Origin: Blastocystis sp. Blastoise
Lineage: Eukaryota; Protista; Bigyra: Opalinata
DNA: 64,000 nucleotides
Reading direction: 5' to 3'
Assembly: GCA_039096225.1 (NCBI GenBank)
Contig: JBBPEB010000025.1
Span: 124,001-188,000 of the forward strand
The position numbers and the translations under genes are program-made. Under the pieces are notes generated by a model. It was not told where the DNA came from, made no database searches, and saw only the letters and a list, made by a program, of their open reading frames with translations. Below, piece after piece: positions 5,333 through 52,704 of the stretch (position 1 is the stretch's first letter; each line of letters starts with the position of its first letter).

Positions 5333-6952
5333 ATGAGTCAAAATCAATCAAATCAAATCAAATGTGAATCTGTTAAGAACATACCTTTTAATCATGCTGC
5401 TCAAGCTATCTTAGAAGATGTTCGTGAACGAATTATACCTGTTGTTGAATCTAATGGTATTCCTCTTCATATGATTCGTGAGGTCTTTTTCCAAAAAGAT
5501 TACTGTGGTATGACAGATACCAAAAGAGGTTGCATTTACTTACAATTAAGAGAGTCAAATAATCAATGTGAATTCTTAAGAGTAGATAACATTATCGGTC
5601 AAGCTATACATCAACTTGTTCATTTAGTCTATAATAATCATGATGAAACGTTTAATCAATTCTATAATAGTTTCTGTACTACATATCAATCTATCTATGG
5701 ACCTGTTACTCCTAAGAAAATTCGTGCTATTGAAAGTAAAATGTTTAGAACTCCTATTATTATTGAAACAGATTTACAAGGTGGTTATGAAAAATGTTGC
5801 TTTTCTGTACCTAATATGGAAGAACACATCCACGGTATTTGTAGTGTTTCTCAATATGAACTCAGTGAAGATGTTGTCATACAAGTTCCTCAAAAACCTG
5901 CTTCAAATCAATTTAATAATAATAACAATATCAAATTAAATACCTGGATATGTCCACGATGCACTTTAGAAAATGAGGGCTCTTCACAAAAATGTAATGC
6001 ATGTGACCTAGAAAAACCTGCTATTTCTTCATTTGTTGATAGAAATAATAATAATAATAATAATAATAATATCTTCTCTCCTCAACCTGACTATCCTCAA
6101 GATGTATGTCAAAGTGTTATTTCTGCTCCTGCAAATTATCCTAATCAAAAACAACCAGAAGTAGATAATTCTGTTCCTTTCAATCCTTATGCTAACGATA
6201 ATAATAATAATAATAATAATCCTTCTGCTTCTTACAGTTTCCAACCTGCCTCATCTAATTCTTATCTTCCTCCTAATCAAGGATTAATTAACAATAATAT
6301 TCAACCTATTTCTAATCCACCCGTATCTCCTATTGCTCCTCAACCTTCTCCTGCTCCTACTGGAATCATTTTCCCTGCTCCTATGGCTCCTGTTGAACCT
6401 AAAGCTCCTATAGCTCCTGTTGCACCTATAGTTCCTATAGCTCCTATAGCTCCCCAACTTCCTAAAGCTCCTGTTGCTCCTCAACCTCCTATGGCTCCTG
6501 AAGCACCTAAAATACTTATAACTCCTCAACCTCCTATGGCTCCTAAAGCTCCTGAAGCACCTAAAGTTCCTCAACCTCCTAAAGCTCCTGAAGCTCCTAA
6601 GATGCCTATAGCTCCTCAACCTCCTATGGCTCCTGTTATGTATAATCCTTCCATAAATACTCAACAACAAATTTCTAATCCTCCTTCAAATTCTCAATTT
6701 ATTACTTCTTCTCCTATGGCTCCTCAACAACCTCAACAACCTCAAAATTATATTAATATGCAATATCAATATCCTTCTCCTATGCCTCAAGTTCCTGCTA
6801 CTAATCCTGTTCAACCTCAATTTATACAAGCTCAAAATGGTGTTCCCTCAATGTCTAATCCTAATCTTGCTCCTAGACCTATGAATATGCCTACTAATAT
6901 ACCTATTCAATATCAAAACTATCAATATCAATATCAATATCCTCAACATTAA
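5333..6952 (+). CDS. WLM (Wss1-like) metallopeptidase-domain protein with RanBP2-type zinc finger and Pro/Gln-rich tail; probably catalytically inactive
   Basis: IYLQLR...AIHQLVHLVYNNHDETF matches the WLM HExxHxxxxxH region with E->Q; WICPRCTLEN....KCNACD RanBP2/NZF finger; PMAP/PKAP repeats. Confidence 0.75.
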   Translation: MSQNQSNQIKCESVKNIPFNHAAQAILEDVRERIIPVVESNGIPLHMIREVFFQKDYCGMTDTKRGCIYLQLRESNNQCEFLRVDNIIGQAIHQLVHLVYNNHDETFNQFYNSFCTTYQSIYGPVTPKKIRAIESKMFRTPIIIETDLQGGYEKCCFSVPNMEEHIHGICSVSQYELSEDVVIQVPQKPASNQFNNNNNIKLNTWICPRCTLENEGSSQKCNACDLEKPAISSFVDRNNNNNNNNNIFSPQPDYPQDVCQSVISAPANYPNQKQPEVDNSVPFNPYANDNNNNNNNPSASYSFQPASSNSYLPPNQGLINNNIQPISNPPVSPIAPQPSPAPTGIIFPAPMAPVEPKAPIAPVAPIVPIAPIAPQLPKAPVAPQPPMAPEAPKILITPQPPMAPKAPEAPKVPQPPKAPEAPKMPIAPQPPMAPVMYNPSINTQQQISNPPSNSQFITSSPMAPQQPQQPQNYINMQYQYPSPMPQVPATNPVQPQFIQAQNGVPSMSNPNLAPRPMNMPTNIPIQYQNYQYQYQYPQH

Positions 6953-16192: not shown

Positions 16193-17213
16193 ATGAGTTA
16201 TTAATATCGATAGAATATTTTGTTTTTCTATAGTGAGTAATAGGAAGAAAGTGATATATACATCTCCTGCCAAACCGAGTAGATTACGATCTCGAATTGG
16301 GCTAGATGTGTCAGATCAAGATCAGAATCCTTTGACAGTTGCTCAGAAAGAGATGAAAAATAAGAAAATAGATATCTCAGAAAGAAAAATAGCTTCAAAG
16401 AGTATTTATTTATAATTGTGCTTGTTATGTCATATATAATCTATGATTCCTTAAATTTATGATTTTAGATTTGAATATGAATGATTTTTGTTATATTGAA
16501 ATGATTTTTATTGTCTATATTCTTCTATAGAAAAAGTCCATGTCAATGATTTACAAATTGTTGCTAATACTTTTGATGATGTATCCAATCATGTATTTGC
16601 ATCTTTAAGAGAACATGGAAAACGTATTCCTGAATCTGCTATTAAGATATTTATAGATGAAGTCAAATCAGACTTAGAGATTTATGTATGTTTTTTATTC
16701 TATTTATTCTATTTATTCTATTTATTCTATTTATTCTATTTATTCTATTCTATTATTATTCTATATATTACTAATATTATAACAATTTATAATACACTTG
16801 CAAATACATATGATGAAACAAAAAAGAAGAAGCGTCAATTAATGTCTTCTATAAACCAATCAAGAGAAGAATTATTTAATGTATATATATACTTGTTTTT
16901 ATTGAAACTATGTATATAAATAGATTAGAAAGAATAAAATAAATCTTATGGAACAAATTTCTAAAGAACAACCTATGTTAGATAAAGAAAAACAAGTATA
17001 TATAATAGTTACTTAGAATATTACTATAATATTTATTAGAATCAACAACAAATCAAAGAAGCTGGTCTTTTCTTTACAGATTTTAAGCAGAAAATATCAA
17101 AAAAAACATTTATATTTGATCGGTATACTACAGTATCTTCAGAAATGATTGACCCTGCTGTTTTCCTAAAGAATCTTAATACAGAACTTCGTTTCTCTCT
17201 TTCTAAACAATAA
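16193..17213 (+). CDS. Coiled-coil protein resembling kinetochore CENP-U/Ame1
   Basis: Spliced product has DLQIVANTF, SAIKIFIDEVK, KKKRQLMSSINQSREELF, IKEAGLFFTDFKQ, FLKNLNTEL, collinear with the CENP-U C-terminal domain as I recall it. Start codon uncertain; one intron (16686-16790) needs a GT-AT junction. Confidence 0.55.
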
Positions 17214-19403: not shown

Positions 19404-19535
19404 ATGGGTCACGATCACGTTGCTAAGGGTGCTCATGGTAAGAAGTTAGATGGTGCTGAAGCTACTAAGGAAGTTAAGCCTGAAGAACATGCTGCTGATG
19501 CCAAGGAAGAAAAACACGGTCATAAGAAGCATTAA
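19404..19535 (+). CDS. 43-aa His/Lys/Glu-rich microprotein MGHDHVAKGAHGKKLDGAEATKEVKPEEHAADAKEEKHGHKKH
   Basis: Isolated ATG..TAA ORF with the codon bias of the highly expressed genes here (GGT, GCT, AAG, GTT) and much higher GC than its flanks; below the ORF-track size cutoff. Confidence 0.75.
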   Translation: MGHDHVAKGAHGKKLDGAEATKEVKPEEHAADAKEEKHGHKKH

Positions 19536-21139: not shown

Positions 21140-22171
21140 ATGCCTTTCACTTTACCTGCTCTTCCTTATGCTAGAAATGCTCTTGAACCTCAAATTTCTG
21201 AAAATACTATCAACTTCCATTATGGCAAACATCATCAAAATTATGTAACATTTTTATTTATATGTATACATAATATGTTTTTAAAATATCATAATAAATT
21301 TTATATATAATTTCTTTTTTTCCATATAATTATGTCAATACTTTAAATACTCTTTTACCTGAAACTGAATCTACTCTTGAAGATCTCATTAAAACCGCTA
21401 CTGGACCTGTATTCAATAATGCTGCTCAAGTTTGGAATCATACTTTCTATTGGAACGTATATATTTATATTAATATTTTATATTTCATATATCTGTATTC
21501 ATTATTTATTCTTTAAATATTCGTTTTTTAAATATTCTAAAATTCATAATCAATTAATATTATTTTTTATTTAGTCTCTTTCTGAAGTTGCTAATCAAAA
21601 ACCTACTGGTGAACTCTTAGAAGCTATTGTTGCTAAATGGGGTTCTTATGAACAATTTATTGAAGCTTTTACTAAAGTAGCTGCTACTCACTTTGGTTCT
21701 GGTTGGGCTTGGCTTGTAAAAGATAAGAATAATGAATTATCTCTTATTAGTACTCATGATGCTGCCAATCCTATTAGAGGTATATTTATATTTATTATAA
21801 TAATTTTGCTATAATAGTGTTTTTTTAAGTTAGTTATTATTATTATTTAAATTTATATATATATTTTATGTTTCTTTTTATAAACATTCTATTCATTTCA
21901 TAAAAATTCTCATTATTATCTATTCTATATCCCATTTACATAAATATTAAATAACTATGTATATTTTTAGATGGTTTCAAGCCTATTCTTTGTTGTGATG
22001 TTTGGGAACATGCTTATTATTTAGATTATCAAAATGCTAGACCTGCTTATTTAAAGAGTATTTATATATGCAAATTTTTATTATTCTTCTATTTTTCTAT
22101 TTATTTAATATATTATAGATTTCTTTGAACGTGCTAATTGGAAATTTGCTCTTGAAAATTATAAATTATAA
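21140..22171 (+). CDS. sodB: Iron superoxide dismutase (5 exons)
   Basis: [33 protein letters not shown] (Fe-type), [20 protein letters not shown]. First intron 21245-21333 has no AG. Confidence 0.95.
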
Positions 22172-22546: not shown

Positions 22547-24232
22547 TTAAATAAGTTCAATAGTAGCACCAACAGCTTTTAATTTCTCTACCATAGCCTA
22601 TAAACAAAGAATAATATAGAAAAAGAAGTAAATAAAAGTATTGGAAATATTTTAATTAATAATATATATATATATATATATACATTAGCTTCATCCTTAG
22701 GAACATTCTCTTTTACATTTGAAGGAGCACCTTCAACAAGAGCCTTTGACTATATATATATATATATAATTTATCTATATATATATATTATTATATCTAT
22801 ATATTAATTTATCTATATATATATATATTATTATATCTATATATTAATTTATCTATCTATATATATTAATTTATCTATATATATATATATTATTATATCT
22901 ATATATTAATTTATCTATCTATATATATACTTCTTTAAGACCAAGACCAGTAATACCACGAACTTCTTTAATAACCTAGACATAATTATATAAATAAAGA
23001 ATTAATAAATAAATAGAATATTTAATATATATATATATATATATACTTTAATCTTATCAGCAGCATTGAATTTCACTAATTTAATTGTAAAATTAGTTTT
23101 TTCTACTTTCTTTTCTTCTTTCTTAGGAGTAGCATTAGCACCACCCTATATAAGAAACATAAGAATAATATATATAATAATAAGAATTATTAAAAGTAAA
23201 TTGAATAACAAATAAATCTAATGAAAATAATACATTAGCAGCAGGAGCAGCAGCCATAGGCATAGAAGCAAAATCAGCATTGAAACCAGTCTTCTTCTAT
23301 ATATTTATAATATTTAATATATTTATATTAAATTTATTAAATATAAAATAATATAAAATAAACATAATATATAGTAATAAACATCTTAAATATACCATAA
23401 GGTAATCAAATAATAAACTAGTATCTACCCAATTTAAGCCTAAAATAGTATCAGCAAGGTATATATTAAGATATACTATTATACATATAATAAAAATAAA
23501 AAATAATAATGAAACAAAAAAAAAATAAATAAATGAAATAAAAAATAAAAAAATAAATAAATAAAATATAATAAAAATTAAAAATAAAAAAATAAAAATA
23601 ACAATAAATAAAATGGATATCTTTTTAAGTTCAGGAGTAATAGGAATATTTCCGGCAGCATCTTCAGCTTTTGTTTGAATAGTTACTTTATTTCCTTTAC
23701 CATCATCTACTACTTTATGAGACTCAGTTTCCTATACATATATCATCATATCAGTTTATACTATCAAGAAAACAATACAAAATAAAAAAAAAATATTATT
23801 AAAGAATAAAATAAAATTATAAATATACAGCAACAACTTTAGCTTCAGCTTGTTTCTTATCAGCTCCAGTAGCTTTCTTAATATCTTTAGCTTCTTTCTC
23901 ACGAGCATCAGCTACTTTAGTTTGAGATTTTTTCATTTCTTCACTCATCTATAAATTATTAAAAAAATATAGTTCTTTTTTATACCTTAGCTTTCTGTTC
24001 ATTTTTAGTCTTCTTGGCAGCTTCACTCTACAGACATATTAGATAGAATCAAATAAATAAATATAAATAAATATAAAAAAAATAGACATACAGCTTCCTT
24101 AGATTCAACAGAGAAGGAACGAATTTGAGAAAGACTATTCATATTGAGAATGACAGGTCTAGACATAATATTGACCGAAGAAGCCATAACAGCTGATCGT
24201 TTTAATCCAGCAACAAGAACCCTAGAAAACAT
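22547..24232 (-). CDS. MRPL12: Mitochondrial ribosomal protein L7/L12 with targeting peptide and long charged N-terminal extension (10 exons)
   Basis: MFSRVLVAGLKRS..QIRSFS presequence; [49 protein letters not shown] C-terminal domain. Confidence 0.92.
23459..23620 (-). other. U12-type (minor spliceosomal) AT-AC intron in MRPL12
   Basis: AAG|ATATCCAT...TATCTTAATATATAC|CTT; restores ELKK|LADTILGL in frame. Confidence 0.85.
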
Positions 24233-36579: not shown

Positions 36580-39240
<2,661 letters not shown>

Positions 39241-40624: not shown

Positions 40625-43600
40625 ATGTTAAAGATATTCATCATACTATTTCTCGTTGCATTTTGTATGATACTTCTCTAATGAATTCTAATTTATTCAT
40701 TTTACCTAGCAAATGCAATTACTTGCACAACAAACCAAGTCGCTGTAACTATTCGTAGAGTTTATGGTGGTAATGCTATGGAAGAAAAGTTATCTATTTA
40801 TCAAGGTACTTCTGCTACTGGTACTCTTTTAGAAACCATTGATGGTAATGGAATGGCTAATAAGATTGTTACTAAAGAATATTGTTTCGCTAGCTCTATT
40901 CACACTTTAGTTGCTGTTGATGGGTACATAAATTTATTGTTTTTAATGTTATTTTATTATTTTTTATATTATTTTTATATTTATATATATATTTTTATAT
41001 TTATATATTATTTTATATTTATATATTATTTTAATATTTATATTATTTCTATAATAAAATTTATAATATTATCTACTTAGTGCTGGTTCTGGTTGGTCTT
41101 CTGGTTCTGAAGTTTTCGTTATTATTGACGGTATTATTATTCTTAGAGAAAACCTTAATAGAGGTGAAATTGCTGAATGGACTTTTACTCGTATGTAATA
41201 CTAATTATTATTATTTCCAAATATTCTTTTAATAATTATTTTATTATTATTTTTAATTTTTTTTTAATAATATTAATATTCTTATTATTATATACCAACT
41301 TATTCCAATTGTCACTCTATAATATAATAATAATAAAACTCCTTTATATATATATAGCTACTTATTCTGTAAAGAAGGGTAGTTCTTGGAAATATACTGC
41401 TACTGCTCAAGTAGGTAATACTTGGACTACTGCTGCTTTTTCAGATGCTGCTTGGACTCCTTATAGTAATGGTACTTTCCCTGTAACTGTAGCTGGAACT
41501 GCTAGATATTATCGTACTACTGCTGTTCTTCCTACTGATTTAACTAATTATGCTACTTTTGAATTAGGTATTAATGCTAAGGAAGGTATTGTTGTCTATA
41601 TTAATGGTATTGAATTATTTAGAAGAAATATTGCTGATGCTACAGTTGTTGCTTCAAATACTCTTGCTACTGGTGAAGATACTACTTATGCTTATAGAAG
41701 AATTACTCATTCTATTAAGAAATATCTTACTGGAGTTACTCAAGCTGTTATTGCTGTTGAAGTCCATCCTGCTGCTACTACTGTTCCTGGAGTTGATTCT
41801 TTTGATGGCTTCTTTATTCCTATTTATGGTTCTTGCTCTAAACGTACTCATTCTGGTGTTGCTTCTAGTGTACCTACTATGACAGGTACCGAATCTGCTG
41901 CTTCTGCCTTTGATAATAACAGAGATACTAAATGGTTTGCAAATCCTATGCCTGTTTCTCTTACTTATCAATTTGATGATGGTAGACGTGAATGGATTAG
42001 TAAGTATGAAATTATTTCTGCTAATGATGTTGCAGGAAGAGATCCTCAAGATTTCACTGTTTCTGGTTCTAATGATAATGGTGTTACTTGGGATTTATTA
42101 GATATTAATGCTGCTGTTACTTATACAGGTAGAAAAGAATCCAAGATGTTCTTAATTCCTTCTAATGCTAGAGCTTATAATATGTATAAAATTGATGTTA
42201 CTTCTCTTAAGGATTCTGCTCAAACTGGTTGTCAATTTGCTGAAGTTGAATTTTATGCTTGTAATACTGATATTATTACTGGATTTGTTTATGAACAAGC
42301 TTCTTATACTTGGTATGCTGGAGTTGATACTGTTTATTTATCTCCTCATTCTTCTGGTTTAAAGACTTTTGCTCTTACTTCTCCTGCTACTCTTCCTGCT
42401 GGTCTCACTTTCAATCCTACTACTGGTGAAATCTATGGTACTCCTACTGCTACTTATACTGGTGCTTTTGTTATTACTGCTATTGATGCTATTACCAATC
42501 AACCTCTTACTTGTACTCTTACTATTTCTATTCTTACTTGCGAAGGTACTGGATTTATGAAACTTAAAGTCACTAAAACTTCTGGTGGTCAAACTCCTTG
42601 GTCTGAATTATATCAACTTATTAATGCTGCTGGACAAACTGTTCTTGATGGTATCAGTTTAGAAGGTGTTACTATGGTTCATAATATATGTGTTCCTGCT
42701 GGTATATACACTCTTAAACTTGTTGATACTGATTCTTCTGGTTGGCATTCTGCTTCTTTAATTACTATTAATACTATTACTAATGTTGATACTTATACTA
42801 TTATTAGAGATACTTTAGTTTCTGGTTATACTTCTTCTGCTACTCTTAATCTTCAATATCTTATTGCTTATAATGATGCTACTACTATGTGTAACATTCA
42901 AGCTGCTGCTGCTCCTGCTGCTAATTGGTATACTACTGCTTTTGTTGCTGATGCTAACTGGACTCCTTGTCTTGCTCTTGCTGCTAGACCTACTTCTCAA
43001 TATCGTGTTCATTATTTTAGAAATACTTTCAATGTCTTATCAAAGACTAATATGAATACTATTGAATTCCGTTTAGCTTCTGCTGAAGGTACTGCCATTT
43101 ATCTTAATGGTCAAGAAGTATATCGTTATGCACTTCCTGCTGGTGATGTTACTCCTGCTACTGTTCCTACTACTGAAACTTTAACTCTTAATTCTAGATC
43201 TATTACTATTGATCTCTCTAAAGTTATTGTTGGTCAAAATGTAATTGCTATAGCTTATGCTTTCCCTGCTGCTGCCACTCTTCCTATTACTGTTAATTTC
43301 AACTACAATGTTCGTCTTGTTGGTGCTTCTAATATTCACTCTCGTACTTGGGGTATGACTGCTGAAGGTCCTTCTAGAAGTACTTCTGAAGGTGTGTCTA
43401 CTCTTATTGATGGTAAATGGTATACTCGTTGGTTCTATAGACTAGTTGATGGTATTAATTTTGATCCTATTACTATTAAATTATCTTATTCTAATGCTGC
43501 TCGTTATGAATATTCTAATAAGTATTGTCTTATTACTGCTTTTGATAGTGCTAATGCTGATCCTACTGATTGGACTCTTCAAGGTTGTAATGGTGAAACT

Positions 43601-46600
43601 TGTACTCTTGTTGATACTGAAGCTAATGTCATGTGGAGAGCTAGATCTCAAAAACAATGCTTTTATATGAATGCTCATACTGAATCTTATAATAATTATA
43701 AACTTATTATTACCAAGAGTACTGGTTATAATGAAAATGCTGATTGTAATGCTGCTGAATTCCAATTATTAGCTGCTGATTTCACTTCTATTGTTGTTCA
43801 ACCTTTAACTTATACTCCTGCTACTGTTCAAGCTTATAAAGATGCTGATATCTCTACTATGACTCCTTCTGATAATTATCATGGATTTGCTATTGTTAGT
43901 GGTGTTTTCCCTTCTGGTATTTATCTTGATACTAACTCTGGTTTCATTTATGGTAAGCCTGTTCAAATTGCTCCTACTACTTCTGTTGTTATTTCTGCTA
44001 AAACTCCTTTGGGTGTTGTTACTCAAACTACTGTTACTATTACTGTTTCTAGTTGTACTGCTCCTAATACCATTCTTAAACTTGAAATGTATAACAAGGC
44101 TAGTAATGGTGGATCCCAAATGGCTTTTATTCTTCAAGATGGTGTTACTTCTCAACAAATTGATATGAGAAGCTCTTTCCCTGATTGGTCTACTACTTAT
44201 TATTCTTATTGTAGACCTGCTGGTTCTTATAAGATTATTGTTACTGATACTGCTAATAATGGTTGGGGTGGTGCTTATCTTCGTGCTTTATATAAGGATA
44301 ATACTGAAATCGTCAAGATTACTCTTGCTGGTAATGAATCTCCTAAGACTACTACTTTTGAAATTCAAGCTCTTTCTGGTCCTGATACTATTTCTTGGAC
44401 TTATTTAAATAGTGCTGTTGTTGCTGCTCCTACTGGTAATACTTGGACTCAACTTTCTTATTCTCCTGCTGGATGGGTAACTGGTACTATTGATACTATG
44501 ACTGCTCCTGTAGGTACTACTCAATATTATAGAACTCTCTTTACTGTTACTAATCCTTCTCTTTATGCTGGTTTTACTTATTCTGTTGATTTAATGGCTG
44601 GTGCTGTTATCTATGTCAATGGTGTTGAAGTTGATAGAATTAATATGCCTACTGGTACTATTACTTCTACTACTTTAGCTACTGCTGATTATGCTACTGT
44701 TCAAACTATTAGTGGAACTATTCATGCTCAATATTCTGGTGTTACTTTTATTGCTGGTCAAAATGTATTAGCTATTGAAACTCATAAGGGTACTATTACT
44801 CAACAATTCACTTATTTCTCTGCTTCTGGTTCTATGGTTGAAGAAGGTAAGAATCTAGTTATTAACGGTAATTATGCTACTAATGGTCCTAATTCTGCTG
44901 GTGCTGAAAACATTGATAAAGTATTTGATGGTTCTGTTGATACTAAATGGTTAGCTCAAGCTGGCTGTACTGGTATTTGGGCTACTTGGACTTATAAGAA
45001 TTCCAGAAAAGAATTTGTTACTTCTTATACTGTAACTAATGCTAATGATTGTAATCAAAGACATCCTTCTGGTTGGAAATTAGAAGGTTCTAATGATAAT
45101 GGTTCTACTTGGGATCTTCTTCATACTGCTGTAGGTGTTACATTTACTGCTTTTAAACAAGGAAAGACTTTTGATTTCTTACCTACTAAGGCTTATAATA
45201 TTTATAGATTTACTAGTACTGAATGTAATAATGCTCGTATTGAAACTGATCCTGCTGTTTGTTCTAATGCTAATCTTCAATTATCTGAAATCTCATTCTC
45301 TATAAAGAGAATTGCTTCTGTTTGTGCTGCTACTGCTGATGGATTCCCTGCTGCTGTTGAAGGTGCTTATTCTTATAAGGCTTGTGGTCAATATCTTAGT
45401 GGTAATAAGAAGAAATTATGTACTGGAGGTGTTTTTGGTGCTGAAGATGCTACTGCTTGTACTCCTACCGCTCCTACTACTTTCAGTTATCCTCAATCAT
45501 TATATACATTCTCTGTTAATACTCCTATTACTCCTATGATTCCTACTATTGATGCTATTCAACTTACTTATACTGTTACTCCTACTCTTCCTTTTGGTTT
45601 AGCTCTTGATGCTACTACTGGTACTATTTCTGGTACTCCTACTATCGGTGCTAATTTAGGTCAATATACTATTACTGCTACTAATAGTGCTGGTACTAAG
45701 GAAGTTACTATTCAAATTGTTGTTAATGGTGGTTCTACTCAACAATTCTGTAATGTTGAAGGTTCTTGGCCTATTACTACTCCTGGTTCTATTGCTACTT
45801 TACCTTGTCCTGCTGGTCAAACTGGTTCTCAAACTAGACCTTGTCTTGCTACTTCTCCTCCTACTTGGGGTTCTGTTACTAGTACTTGTACAGCTGCTGG
45901 TGGTACTGTTACTGTAACTTATCCTCAAACTACTTATACTTTATCTGTTGGTAGTATTGCTTCTATTATTCCTAGTACTACTGGTACTATTAATAGTTGG
46001 TCTATTTCTCCTCTTACTCTTCCTTCTGGTTTAACATTCCAAAAAGGTGTTATTAATGGTGTTCCTACTGTAGCTTCTAATGTTCAAGTTTATACTATTA
46101 CTGCTGTTGGTACAAATACTGTTACTGTTACTCTTACTATAAGTGTTAGTACTTTAACATGTCCTGCTGATGGTCAATGGCCTAGTACTGCTCGTGGTGC
46201 TACTGCTACTTTAGCTTGTCCTTCTCAATATCAAACTGGTTCTAGAACTAGACAATGTCTTAATACTGATCCTGCTACTTGGGCTGCTGAAGTTAATTCT
46301 TGTGTTTATACTCAACCTGTTATTGCTTATAATCCTGCTACTATTAGTACTAATATCAATGTAGCTATTACTCCTATTACTCCTACTATTACTGGGTATG
46401 CTACTTCTTGGACTATTACTCCTACTCTTCCTTCTGGATTAGTATTCAATGCTGCTAATGGTCAAATTTCTGGTACTCCTGTTGTTGCTGCAGCTACTTC
46501 TTCTTATCTTGTTACTGCTACTAATCCTAATACTAGTGGTACTACTTCTATTTCTATTACTGTTATTAATCCTCAATGTGCTGCTGATGGTACTTGGCCT

Positions 46601-47716
46601 GTAACTGCTGCTGGTCAAACTGCTACTCTTGCTTGTACTGATACTCAAAAAGAAGGTCAAATGACTAGAATTTGTGGTTCTAATGCTATTTGGGGAGCTG
46701 TTAATGATGCTTGTACTTATAAAGCTCCTGTTGTTACTATTCCTCAACAACAATATACTGTATATAAAGGTGATAATGTAAATATTGTTCCTACTGCTAC
46801 TAACTATGTTCAATCTTGGACTGTTACTCCTGCTCTTCCTACTGGTCTTACTCTTAATGCTCAAGCTGGTGTTATCTCTGGTACTCCTACTGCTGCTCAA
46901 GGTCAATTAATGTACACTTTAACTGCTCTTAATCCTAACAAACAAGGTATTGCTACCTTCTATCTTACTATTAACAATAAGGTTTGTAGTGCTGATAGTG
47001 TTTGGCCTCAAACTGAAGCTGGTACTACTGCTTATATTCTTTGTTCTGGTTCTACTACTGCTATTCGTTCTCGTGTTTGTACTGTTTCTGGTACTAGTGG
47101 TATTTGGGGAACTGAAGATGTTTCTACTTGTGTTACTGTATCTTCTAATGATAATCCTTCTGCTGATCGTTCTTTTGTTAAATTCCCTATAAGACTTGTT
47201 GGTATGTCTGCTGCTCAAATTCAAGGTAGACAAATAGCTGCTATTCAAAGAGTATTCTTCAATGCTGTTCAATCTTATGGTGTTGTTGCTACTGGTATTG
47301 CTGTTGAAAGTATTTCTGATGGTAATTTCTATGCTGCTGGTGCTCAAGTTGTTGTTCGAGTTGATACTGCTGCTACTAATGTAGAAGCTGTACGTTCTAC
47401 TGTTAATAATCTTTCTAACTCTTTAGCTAATAATTTACGTGTTCAAGATAGTACTGCTTTTGCTTCTCTTCAAAGTGCTTCTGTTGATACTGCTAGCGTT
47501 AAGGTAACAAATCACAATCCTATGACTACTGGTATGATTATTCTTATTGTTGTTGTTGTAATCTTTGTTGTCATTGCTGTTGCTATTGTTGTCTTCTGTA
47601 TTATGAATCGTGCTAAAGGTGCTAAGGGTAAGAAAGCTCATAAGAAATTAGGTGCTGTCCCTAAGGCTGCTACTAAGGTTCCTGCTAAGAAGGAAGCTAA
47701 GGCTACTAAAGTCTAA
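40625..47716 (+). CDS. Giant (~2240 aa) type-I membrane surface protein: 3x [jelly-roll + F5/8C-like] modules, He_PIG Ig repeats alternating with HRM-like Cys modules, TM
   Basis: Exons 40625-40664 (MLKIFIILFLVAF), 40711-40923, 41081-41191, 41358-47716; AFDNNRDTKW/VFDGSVDTKW; TPTLPxGL..GxISGTP; CxxxGxWPxTxxGxxATLxC..R.C....W.....C; TM MIILIVVVVIFVVIAVAIVVFCI. Paralogous to 7362-12623. Confidence 0.9.

Positions 47717-47875: not shown

Positions 47876-52704
<4,829 letters not shown>

Follow-up and report, generated by a model that had tools for sequence, protein, structure and literature searches.

The first intron of the Fe-SOD gene of Blastocystis sp. Blastoise is a genuine intron and probably a canonical one. 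In the public assembly, it begins with TT and ends with AA at what appears to be its best-supported position, 21241-21329 of the window (the whole stretch of DNA analysed here, 64,000 nucleotides of contig JBBPEB010000025.1, positions 124,001-188,000). We infer that genomic DNA carries a G at both 21241 and 21329. From the sequence patterns described below, it is likely that spliced reads overwrote these and other intron ends during the polishing of the assembly and that Fe-SOD intron 1 would be an ordinary GT-AG intron. If other types of assembly errors are counted in, an artefactual origin of the odd ends becomes very likely. Overwritten consensus bases were one of the two options put forward in a preliminary description of this DNA, and this option is the one best supported by the present analysis.

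The Fe-SOD gene lies on the forward strand. Exon 1 (21140-21240), which overlaps an RNA contig (21113-21237) and matches Sod_Fe_N 2-32, stops at the intron position of the orthologues, inside the Asn codon of H-H-Q-N-Y (phase 2). Exon 2 (21330-21456) matches Sod_Fe_N 35-79, exon 3 (21575-21779) Sod_Fe_C 1-60 and exon 4 (21971-22057) Sod_Fe_C 61-90, while exon 5 (22119-22171) ends with a TAA stop. RNA joints support exons 2 to 5 as well as the canonical GT-AG introns 2 (21457-21574), 3 (21780-21970) and 4 (22058-22118). Pfam matches of spliced gene models were obtained by searching exons one at a time. No further copy of this gene was found in the genome (33.34 Mb in 34 contigs, about 23% GC), which holds only a distant Fe-SOD paralogue (L010:1069-1911, contig C8). 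This paralogue encodes an N-terminal extension resembling a targeting peptide and has two canonical introns, whose positions differ from those of the window gene. Among the orthologues, L013 carries an additional intron 5' of H-F-G-S-G (region 6400-6440, to be compared with 21670-21690 of the window) that is lacking in the window gene, and L025 is devoid of intron 2.

Other coding sequences deserve mention. The region 40625-47716 of the window encodes a He_PIG surface protein of 2,240 aa that has two paralogues sharing at least 90% identity in the same genome; a similar large gene (L013:1-5602) adjoins SOD in mammal-host Blastocystis. A single-exon ORF on the forward strand (19404-19535) encodes 43 aa rich in His and Lys; RNA contigs cover it, a related-strain contig shows it without differences, and no called gene is on record. 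In another locus (L026:9780-9813, forward strand), a T7 run within a very long ORF shows an apparent one-base frameshift, which might reflect a Nanopore homopolymer error left in the assembly.

Removal of Fe-SOD intron 1 is directly seen in RNA. In the same-strain RNA contigs (run X1), exactly 89 nt are absent at a k-mer depth of about 17,450, and these contigs show zero differences from the assembly. The removal joins the Sod_Fe_N match of exon 1 to that of exon 2, which bears out the proposal that splicing restores the SOD. Run X1 carries no library description and contains spliced RNA. The layout of its contigs used a threshold of 1%, under which rare intron-retaining contigs could be hidden. 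A contig of depth 7 near 21211 showed no tie to intron retention, and adapter-bearing contigs account for it equally well. Template switching by reverse transcriptase was also rejected as the source of the 89-nt gap, since the conserved protein requires the removal and the site is the orthologous intron position.

The junction carries a direct repeat of 8 nt, 21239-21246 (left copy) being identical to 21328-21335 (right copy). Since these eight letters fit both sides of the joint, nine registers lead to an identical mRNA and RNA cannot pick one of them. The preliminary description had placed the intron at 21245-21333 and considered its GT-AT ends as obligatory. Its reading of the letters was accurate (89 nt starting with GTAACA, ending with AATTAT and devoid of AG, with a direct repeat at the junction), but the ends are not obligatory, as this register is the same deletion shifted by 4 nt inside the repeat.

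The choice between registers relies on splice scores and orthologues. A two-strand gene model was trained on about 290 kb (the window, 200 kb of contig C1 and six short loci). It gave a tight consensus, GTAT(A/G/T)T for the donor and (A)TATAG for the acceptor, with A at +3 (98%) and T at +4 (92%). Registers were scored against 363 canonical introns, the two end bases being left out. The register 21241-21329 reaches the 43rd percentile for the donor and the 48th for the acceptor; the donor of the register 21245-21333 lies under all 363 canonical introns (0th percentile) and its acceptor at the 7th percentile. In the same set, GTATGT starts 33 introns and ATATAG ends 175, while none starts with GTAAC (0/363). 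In the register 21241-21329, the intron reads TTATGT...ATATAA, one base off the typical GTATGT...ATATAG at either end. The T that replaces the donor G at 21241 is the first base of exon 2 and is followed by five bases matching this exon. In the same way, the A that replaces the acceptor G at 21329 is the last base of exon 1, next to one matching base. Furthermore, in DNA assemblies of mammal-host Blastocystis, the orthologues (L013 to L024 and L025) contain a phase-2 GT-AG intron located two bases into the codon preceding Y-V-N, i.e., at the place of 21241-21329 in the window.

Fe-SOD intron 1 thus resembles the U2-type GT-AG introns of Blastocystis (PMC5608401) by its exact removal from the mRNA, its orthologue position and its extended consensus (donor +2 to +8, acceptor -8 to -2). 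It differs from them by its two terminal Gs, both replaced by the mRNA base in the assembly, which has TT and AA instead of GT and AG. A U12 type (RTATCCTT donor with an AC or AG end) was rejected, being found in none of the nine registers, in agreement with the earlier remark that a U12 donor is absent. U12-type AT-AC introns do occur in Blastocystis (346 in ST1), apparently also in this window, whereas the SOD intron has neither a U12 donor in any register nor an AC end. The intron of the window (23459-23620, reverse strand, 162 nt), located in the mitochondrial L7/L12 gene, has AT-AC ends, a near-U12 donor (ATATCCAT) and a branch-like motif, TCTTAAT; it does not copy the mRNA and, from these features, looks like a real minor intron.

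Odd ends are not restricted to Fe-SOD. Five other sites of the window had been reported to depart from GT-AG by one base and check out as such at the sequence level; the SOD intron, which had been counted with them, departs by two bases in its best register. The 105-nt GT..AT intron at 16686-16790 (forward strand) ends with the mRNA base, followed by five matches, and is spliced in RNA from a related strain (X2). The 5'-nucleotidase gene (forward strand) holds three odd introns. Two of them are GT..AT introns in a TA-repeat context whose last base is the mRNA base, with five matches beyond it at 38141-38192, an intron called from frame continuity and PF05761, and zero at 38461-38528. The third (38601-38676), an AT..AG intron made of pure TA repeat, starts with the mRNA base, then one match. 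The TT..AG intron at 52226-52268 (reverse strand, 43 nt) starts with the mRNA base, then six matches. These last four introns have reading frame and partial Pfam matches as their basis, that at 52226-52268 frame continuity.

Five extra odd introns come from contig C1, namely those with three acceptors of RPS5, the donor of a gene encoding an RRM and the acceptor of a NadA-like gene. In RPS5 (L033, forward strand), all five donors are canonical and three of the five acceptors are odd (164-268, 439-546 and 1009-1109; GT-TG, GT-AA and GT-AT), each showing the mRNA base. In the GT-TG intron, the odd base is located at -2, precisely where the first mismatch falls. The RRM gene intron (L045:3860-3977, reverse strand), with an AT donor, has a 13-nt junction repeat, and its final 11 nt are identical to those closing the upstream exon; such a stretch of exon sequence inside an intron end argues for an artefact. 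The gene that we presume to be NadA-like, for which Pfam gave no match, carries on the reverse strand a GT-AA intron that copies the mRNA (L045:9259-9458) and a second one, read as GA-AG or AT-AG, that does not (L045:8961-9093); this latter may be a GA-AG intron. Altogether, the odd end pairs are mixed (TT-AA, GT-AT, AT-AG, TT-AG, GT-TG and GT-AA). De novo calls of odd introns are noisy, most of the ten candidates checked by eye having a canonical alternative or being doubtful.

The previous observation that the deviant base is the one present in the mRNA across the intron holds at 12 of the 13 odd ends examined, the exception being L045:8961-9093. On base composition, agreement at these 12 positions (11 introns) would arise by chance with a probability of 1.6e-4, a value calculated before selection bias, as six introns come from the earlier list and mRNA-matching candidates received closer scrutiny. 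The numbers of matches to the far exon after the odd base are 0, 0, 1, 1, 1, 1, 1, 2, 5, 5, 5 and 6. Among the canonical ends that face a non-G exon base, 30 have runs of three or four matches and two have runs of at least five. Ends with at least five matches are thus odd in 4/6 cases and those with three or four in 0/30 (Fisher p=2.5e-4), a comparison affected by the incomplete search for odd ends outside the window. In the window alone, which was read fully, the corresponding figures are 4/4 and 0/7 (p=0.003).

By default, BWA-MEM scores +1 for a match and -4 for a mismatch, with 5 for clipping. With the +1/-4 scores, five matches are the minimum that carries a local alignment past one mismatch. 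Both polishers named for the assembly rely on this aligner. An overhang model was built by applying the BWA-MEM rule to 46 ends of four genes, the consensus base being restored in silico. Under this rule, the number of mis-extended reads per read start is 75 at three of the 46 ends and 1 to 7 elsewhere; the three ends with 75 such reads are odd in the assembly. The model does not separate the six odd ends with short matches, including the SOD acceptor, from unaffected ends of the same genes.

One protein encoded in the window shows 100% identity to WA158_004477 of Blastocystis sp. Blastoise. We infer that the Blastoise assembly is that of strain Rus-B, isolated from a Russian tortoise and described as 33.3 Mb in 33 scaffolds with 23.1% GC (PMC12129017). 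Nanopore R9 reads were assembled using Flye and corrected with racon, three rounds of Polypolish (“Illumina DNA”) and one round of POLCA (“short-read”); the deposited data named for this strain are assemblies and RNA-seq only (PMC12129017). POLCA, which uses bwa mem, changes a base when at least two reads support the change and are twice the reference count (PMC7347232). Polypolish asks for at least five reads and more than 50% of them, and trims alignments, in its own wording, “at the end” (PMC8812927). Mis-mapping of RNA reads leads to false RNA-DNA differences located six bases or less from splice sites, which are routinely filtered (PMC4989487). The Methods are ambiguously worded as to the reads given to the polishers; RNA reads would presumably have entered one of them.

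If so, the DNA would contain, at a site common to other Blastocystis, an ordinary U2-type intron (21241-21329, GTATGT...ATATAG). During short-read polishing, spliced reads derived from RNA would be placed by an aligner unaware of splicing and would extend by a few bases into the intron, where exon bases would outvote the true terminal G. With at least five matches past the mismatch, every junction read would bring the wrong base. With fewer, the wrong base would be found just in reads ending one or two bases beyond the junction, so that chiefly the genes of very abundant transcripts would be affected. This is comparable to the junction mis-mapping of RNA reads (PMC4989487), acting here through Polypolish (PMC8812927) or POLCA (PMC7347232): the changes lie inside the first two intronic bases, the odd bases copy the exon past the junction and their onset coincides with the break-even length of the aligner. 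It differs in that a public reference would carry the changes and that RNA polishing is absent from the Methods statement. Directly shown are the splicing event, its register, the agreement of the odd bases with the mRNA, the step at five matches and the names of the polishers.

Several observations weigh against it. Besides the naming of Illumina DNA as the Polypolish input, six odd ends have short matches, and other ends in the same genes would need to be protected by intron retention. Run X1 hardly covers the gene at 16193-17213; the odd base there would thus require almost no DNA reads. Introns of 43 and 61 nt belonging to abundant transcripts are still present in the assembly. The 363 canonical introns include three with a net-positive extension for 4.0 expected, a number that shows no depletion, and L045:8961-9093 does not follow the rule. 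If Polypolish trims just one end of each alignment, a one-sided bias in contig orientation would be expected. Genome-wide motif counts (donors, 45,362 forward and 46,297 reverse; acceptors, 39,877 forward and 40,343 reverse) revealed no left/right bias in a test of low power (log difference -0.009 +/- 0.010). By contig orientation, the odd ends with short matches are distributed as six right and two left.

The main rival explanation takes the odd bases as real. In this case, spliced RNA or cDNA would have rewritten chromosomal intron ends by partial templated gene conversion, with microhomology at the junction, and the major spliceosome of this lineage would tolerate the outcome, a scenario that seems unlikely to us without being negligible. 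Its corollary, that introns having lost one or even both terminal Gs are still removed exactly if the remaining splice signal is strong, even in abundant essential transcripts, is to be doubted to the same extent. Real bases would account for the mRNA-matching rule and for its links with microhomology and with abundant transcripts, and DNA is what the Methods name for Polypolish. However, SOD would require two separate conversions, each sparing the 87 nt between them; the signals beside the G are very tight (positions +3 and +4, see above), and the step between four and five matches is left without reason. Furthermore, according to structural data, the 3' AG is recognised when paired to the 5' site and to the branch A, and mixed ends such as TT-AA, GT-TG, AT-AG and GT-AA, which follow no compensatory logic, therefore do not fit.

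Real bases would also mean a major spliceosome accepting non-GT/AG ends, as in Fritillaria borealis, but 95% of the introns of this species are non-GT/AG and its U2AF is duplicated (PMC13326754). In Blastoise, a few per cent of introns are odd, with mixed ends that each copy the far exon, while the predicted introns are overwhelmingly GT-AG with a tight consensus and the RNA joints of the canonical set are GT-AG except two. The Prp8 PROCN domain is present at one locus of the genome. In an independent ST1 assembly, 98.3% of the introns are GT-AG, and the other classes described are GC-AG, GA-AG and U12 AT-AC only.

Assembly errors unrelated to RNA, i.e., Gs lost beside TA repeats owing to Nanopore R9 reads or multi-mapped DNA reads, with a match to the mRNA by chance, appear improbable. 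They would fit the three sites whose odd base prolongs a TA repeat (38192, 38528 and 38601), and this strain was sequenced with R9 chemistry, but the sites in SOD, RPS5, RRM and NadA and that at 16790 are not all inside TA repeats, twelve chance matches would be exceptional (see the value above) and no concentration at intron ends is expected. Finally, the other option of the preliminary description, a true GT-AT intron at 21245-21333 removed by a relaxed major spliceosome with the help of the repeat, is compatible with RNA and, of all registers, departs least from GT-AG in the current assembly, but is highly improbable, for it combines a donor start and score foreign to all canonical introns with a 4-nt slide of the intron relative to the orthologues, and leaves aside the odd bases on the donor side or at -2. 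The mixed nature of the odd ends and the otherwise normal splice signals do not support it either.

Exact look-ups for DNA of a sister strain or of a second assembly gave no match, and protein searches for sister strains led only to Blastoise proteins and mammal-host relatives. A metagenome scan gave no match above 62% identity, and a literature search no description of such intron ends in Blastocystis.

If the bases were real, the major spliceosome of this organism would be indifferent to terminal Gs, and splice sites would undergo RNA-templated rewriting. If the overwriting of intron ends by spliced reads is true, the Fe-SOD intron would be an ordinary one and the public Blastoise assembly would hold mRNA-derived bases at intron ends. 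Gene models would then be broken, and all non-canonical introns reported from this assembly would be doubtful.
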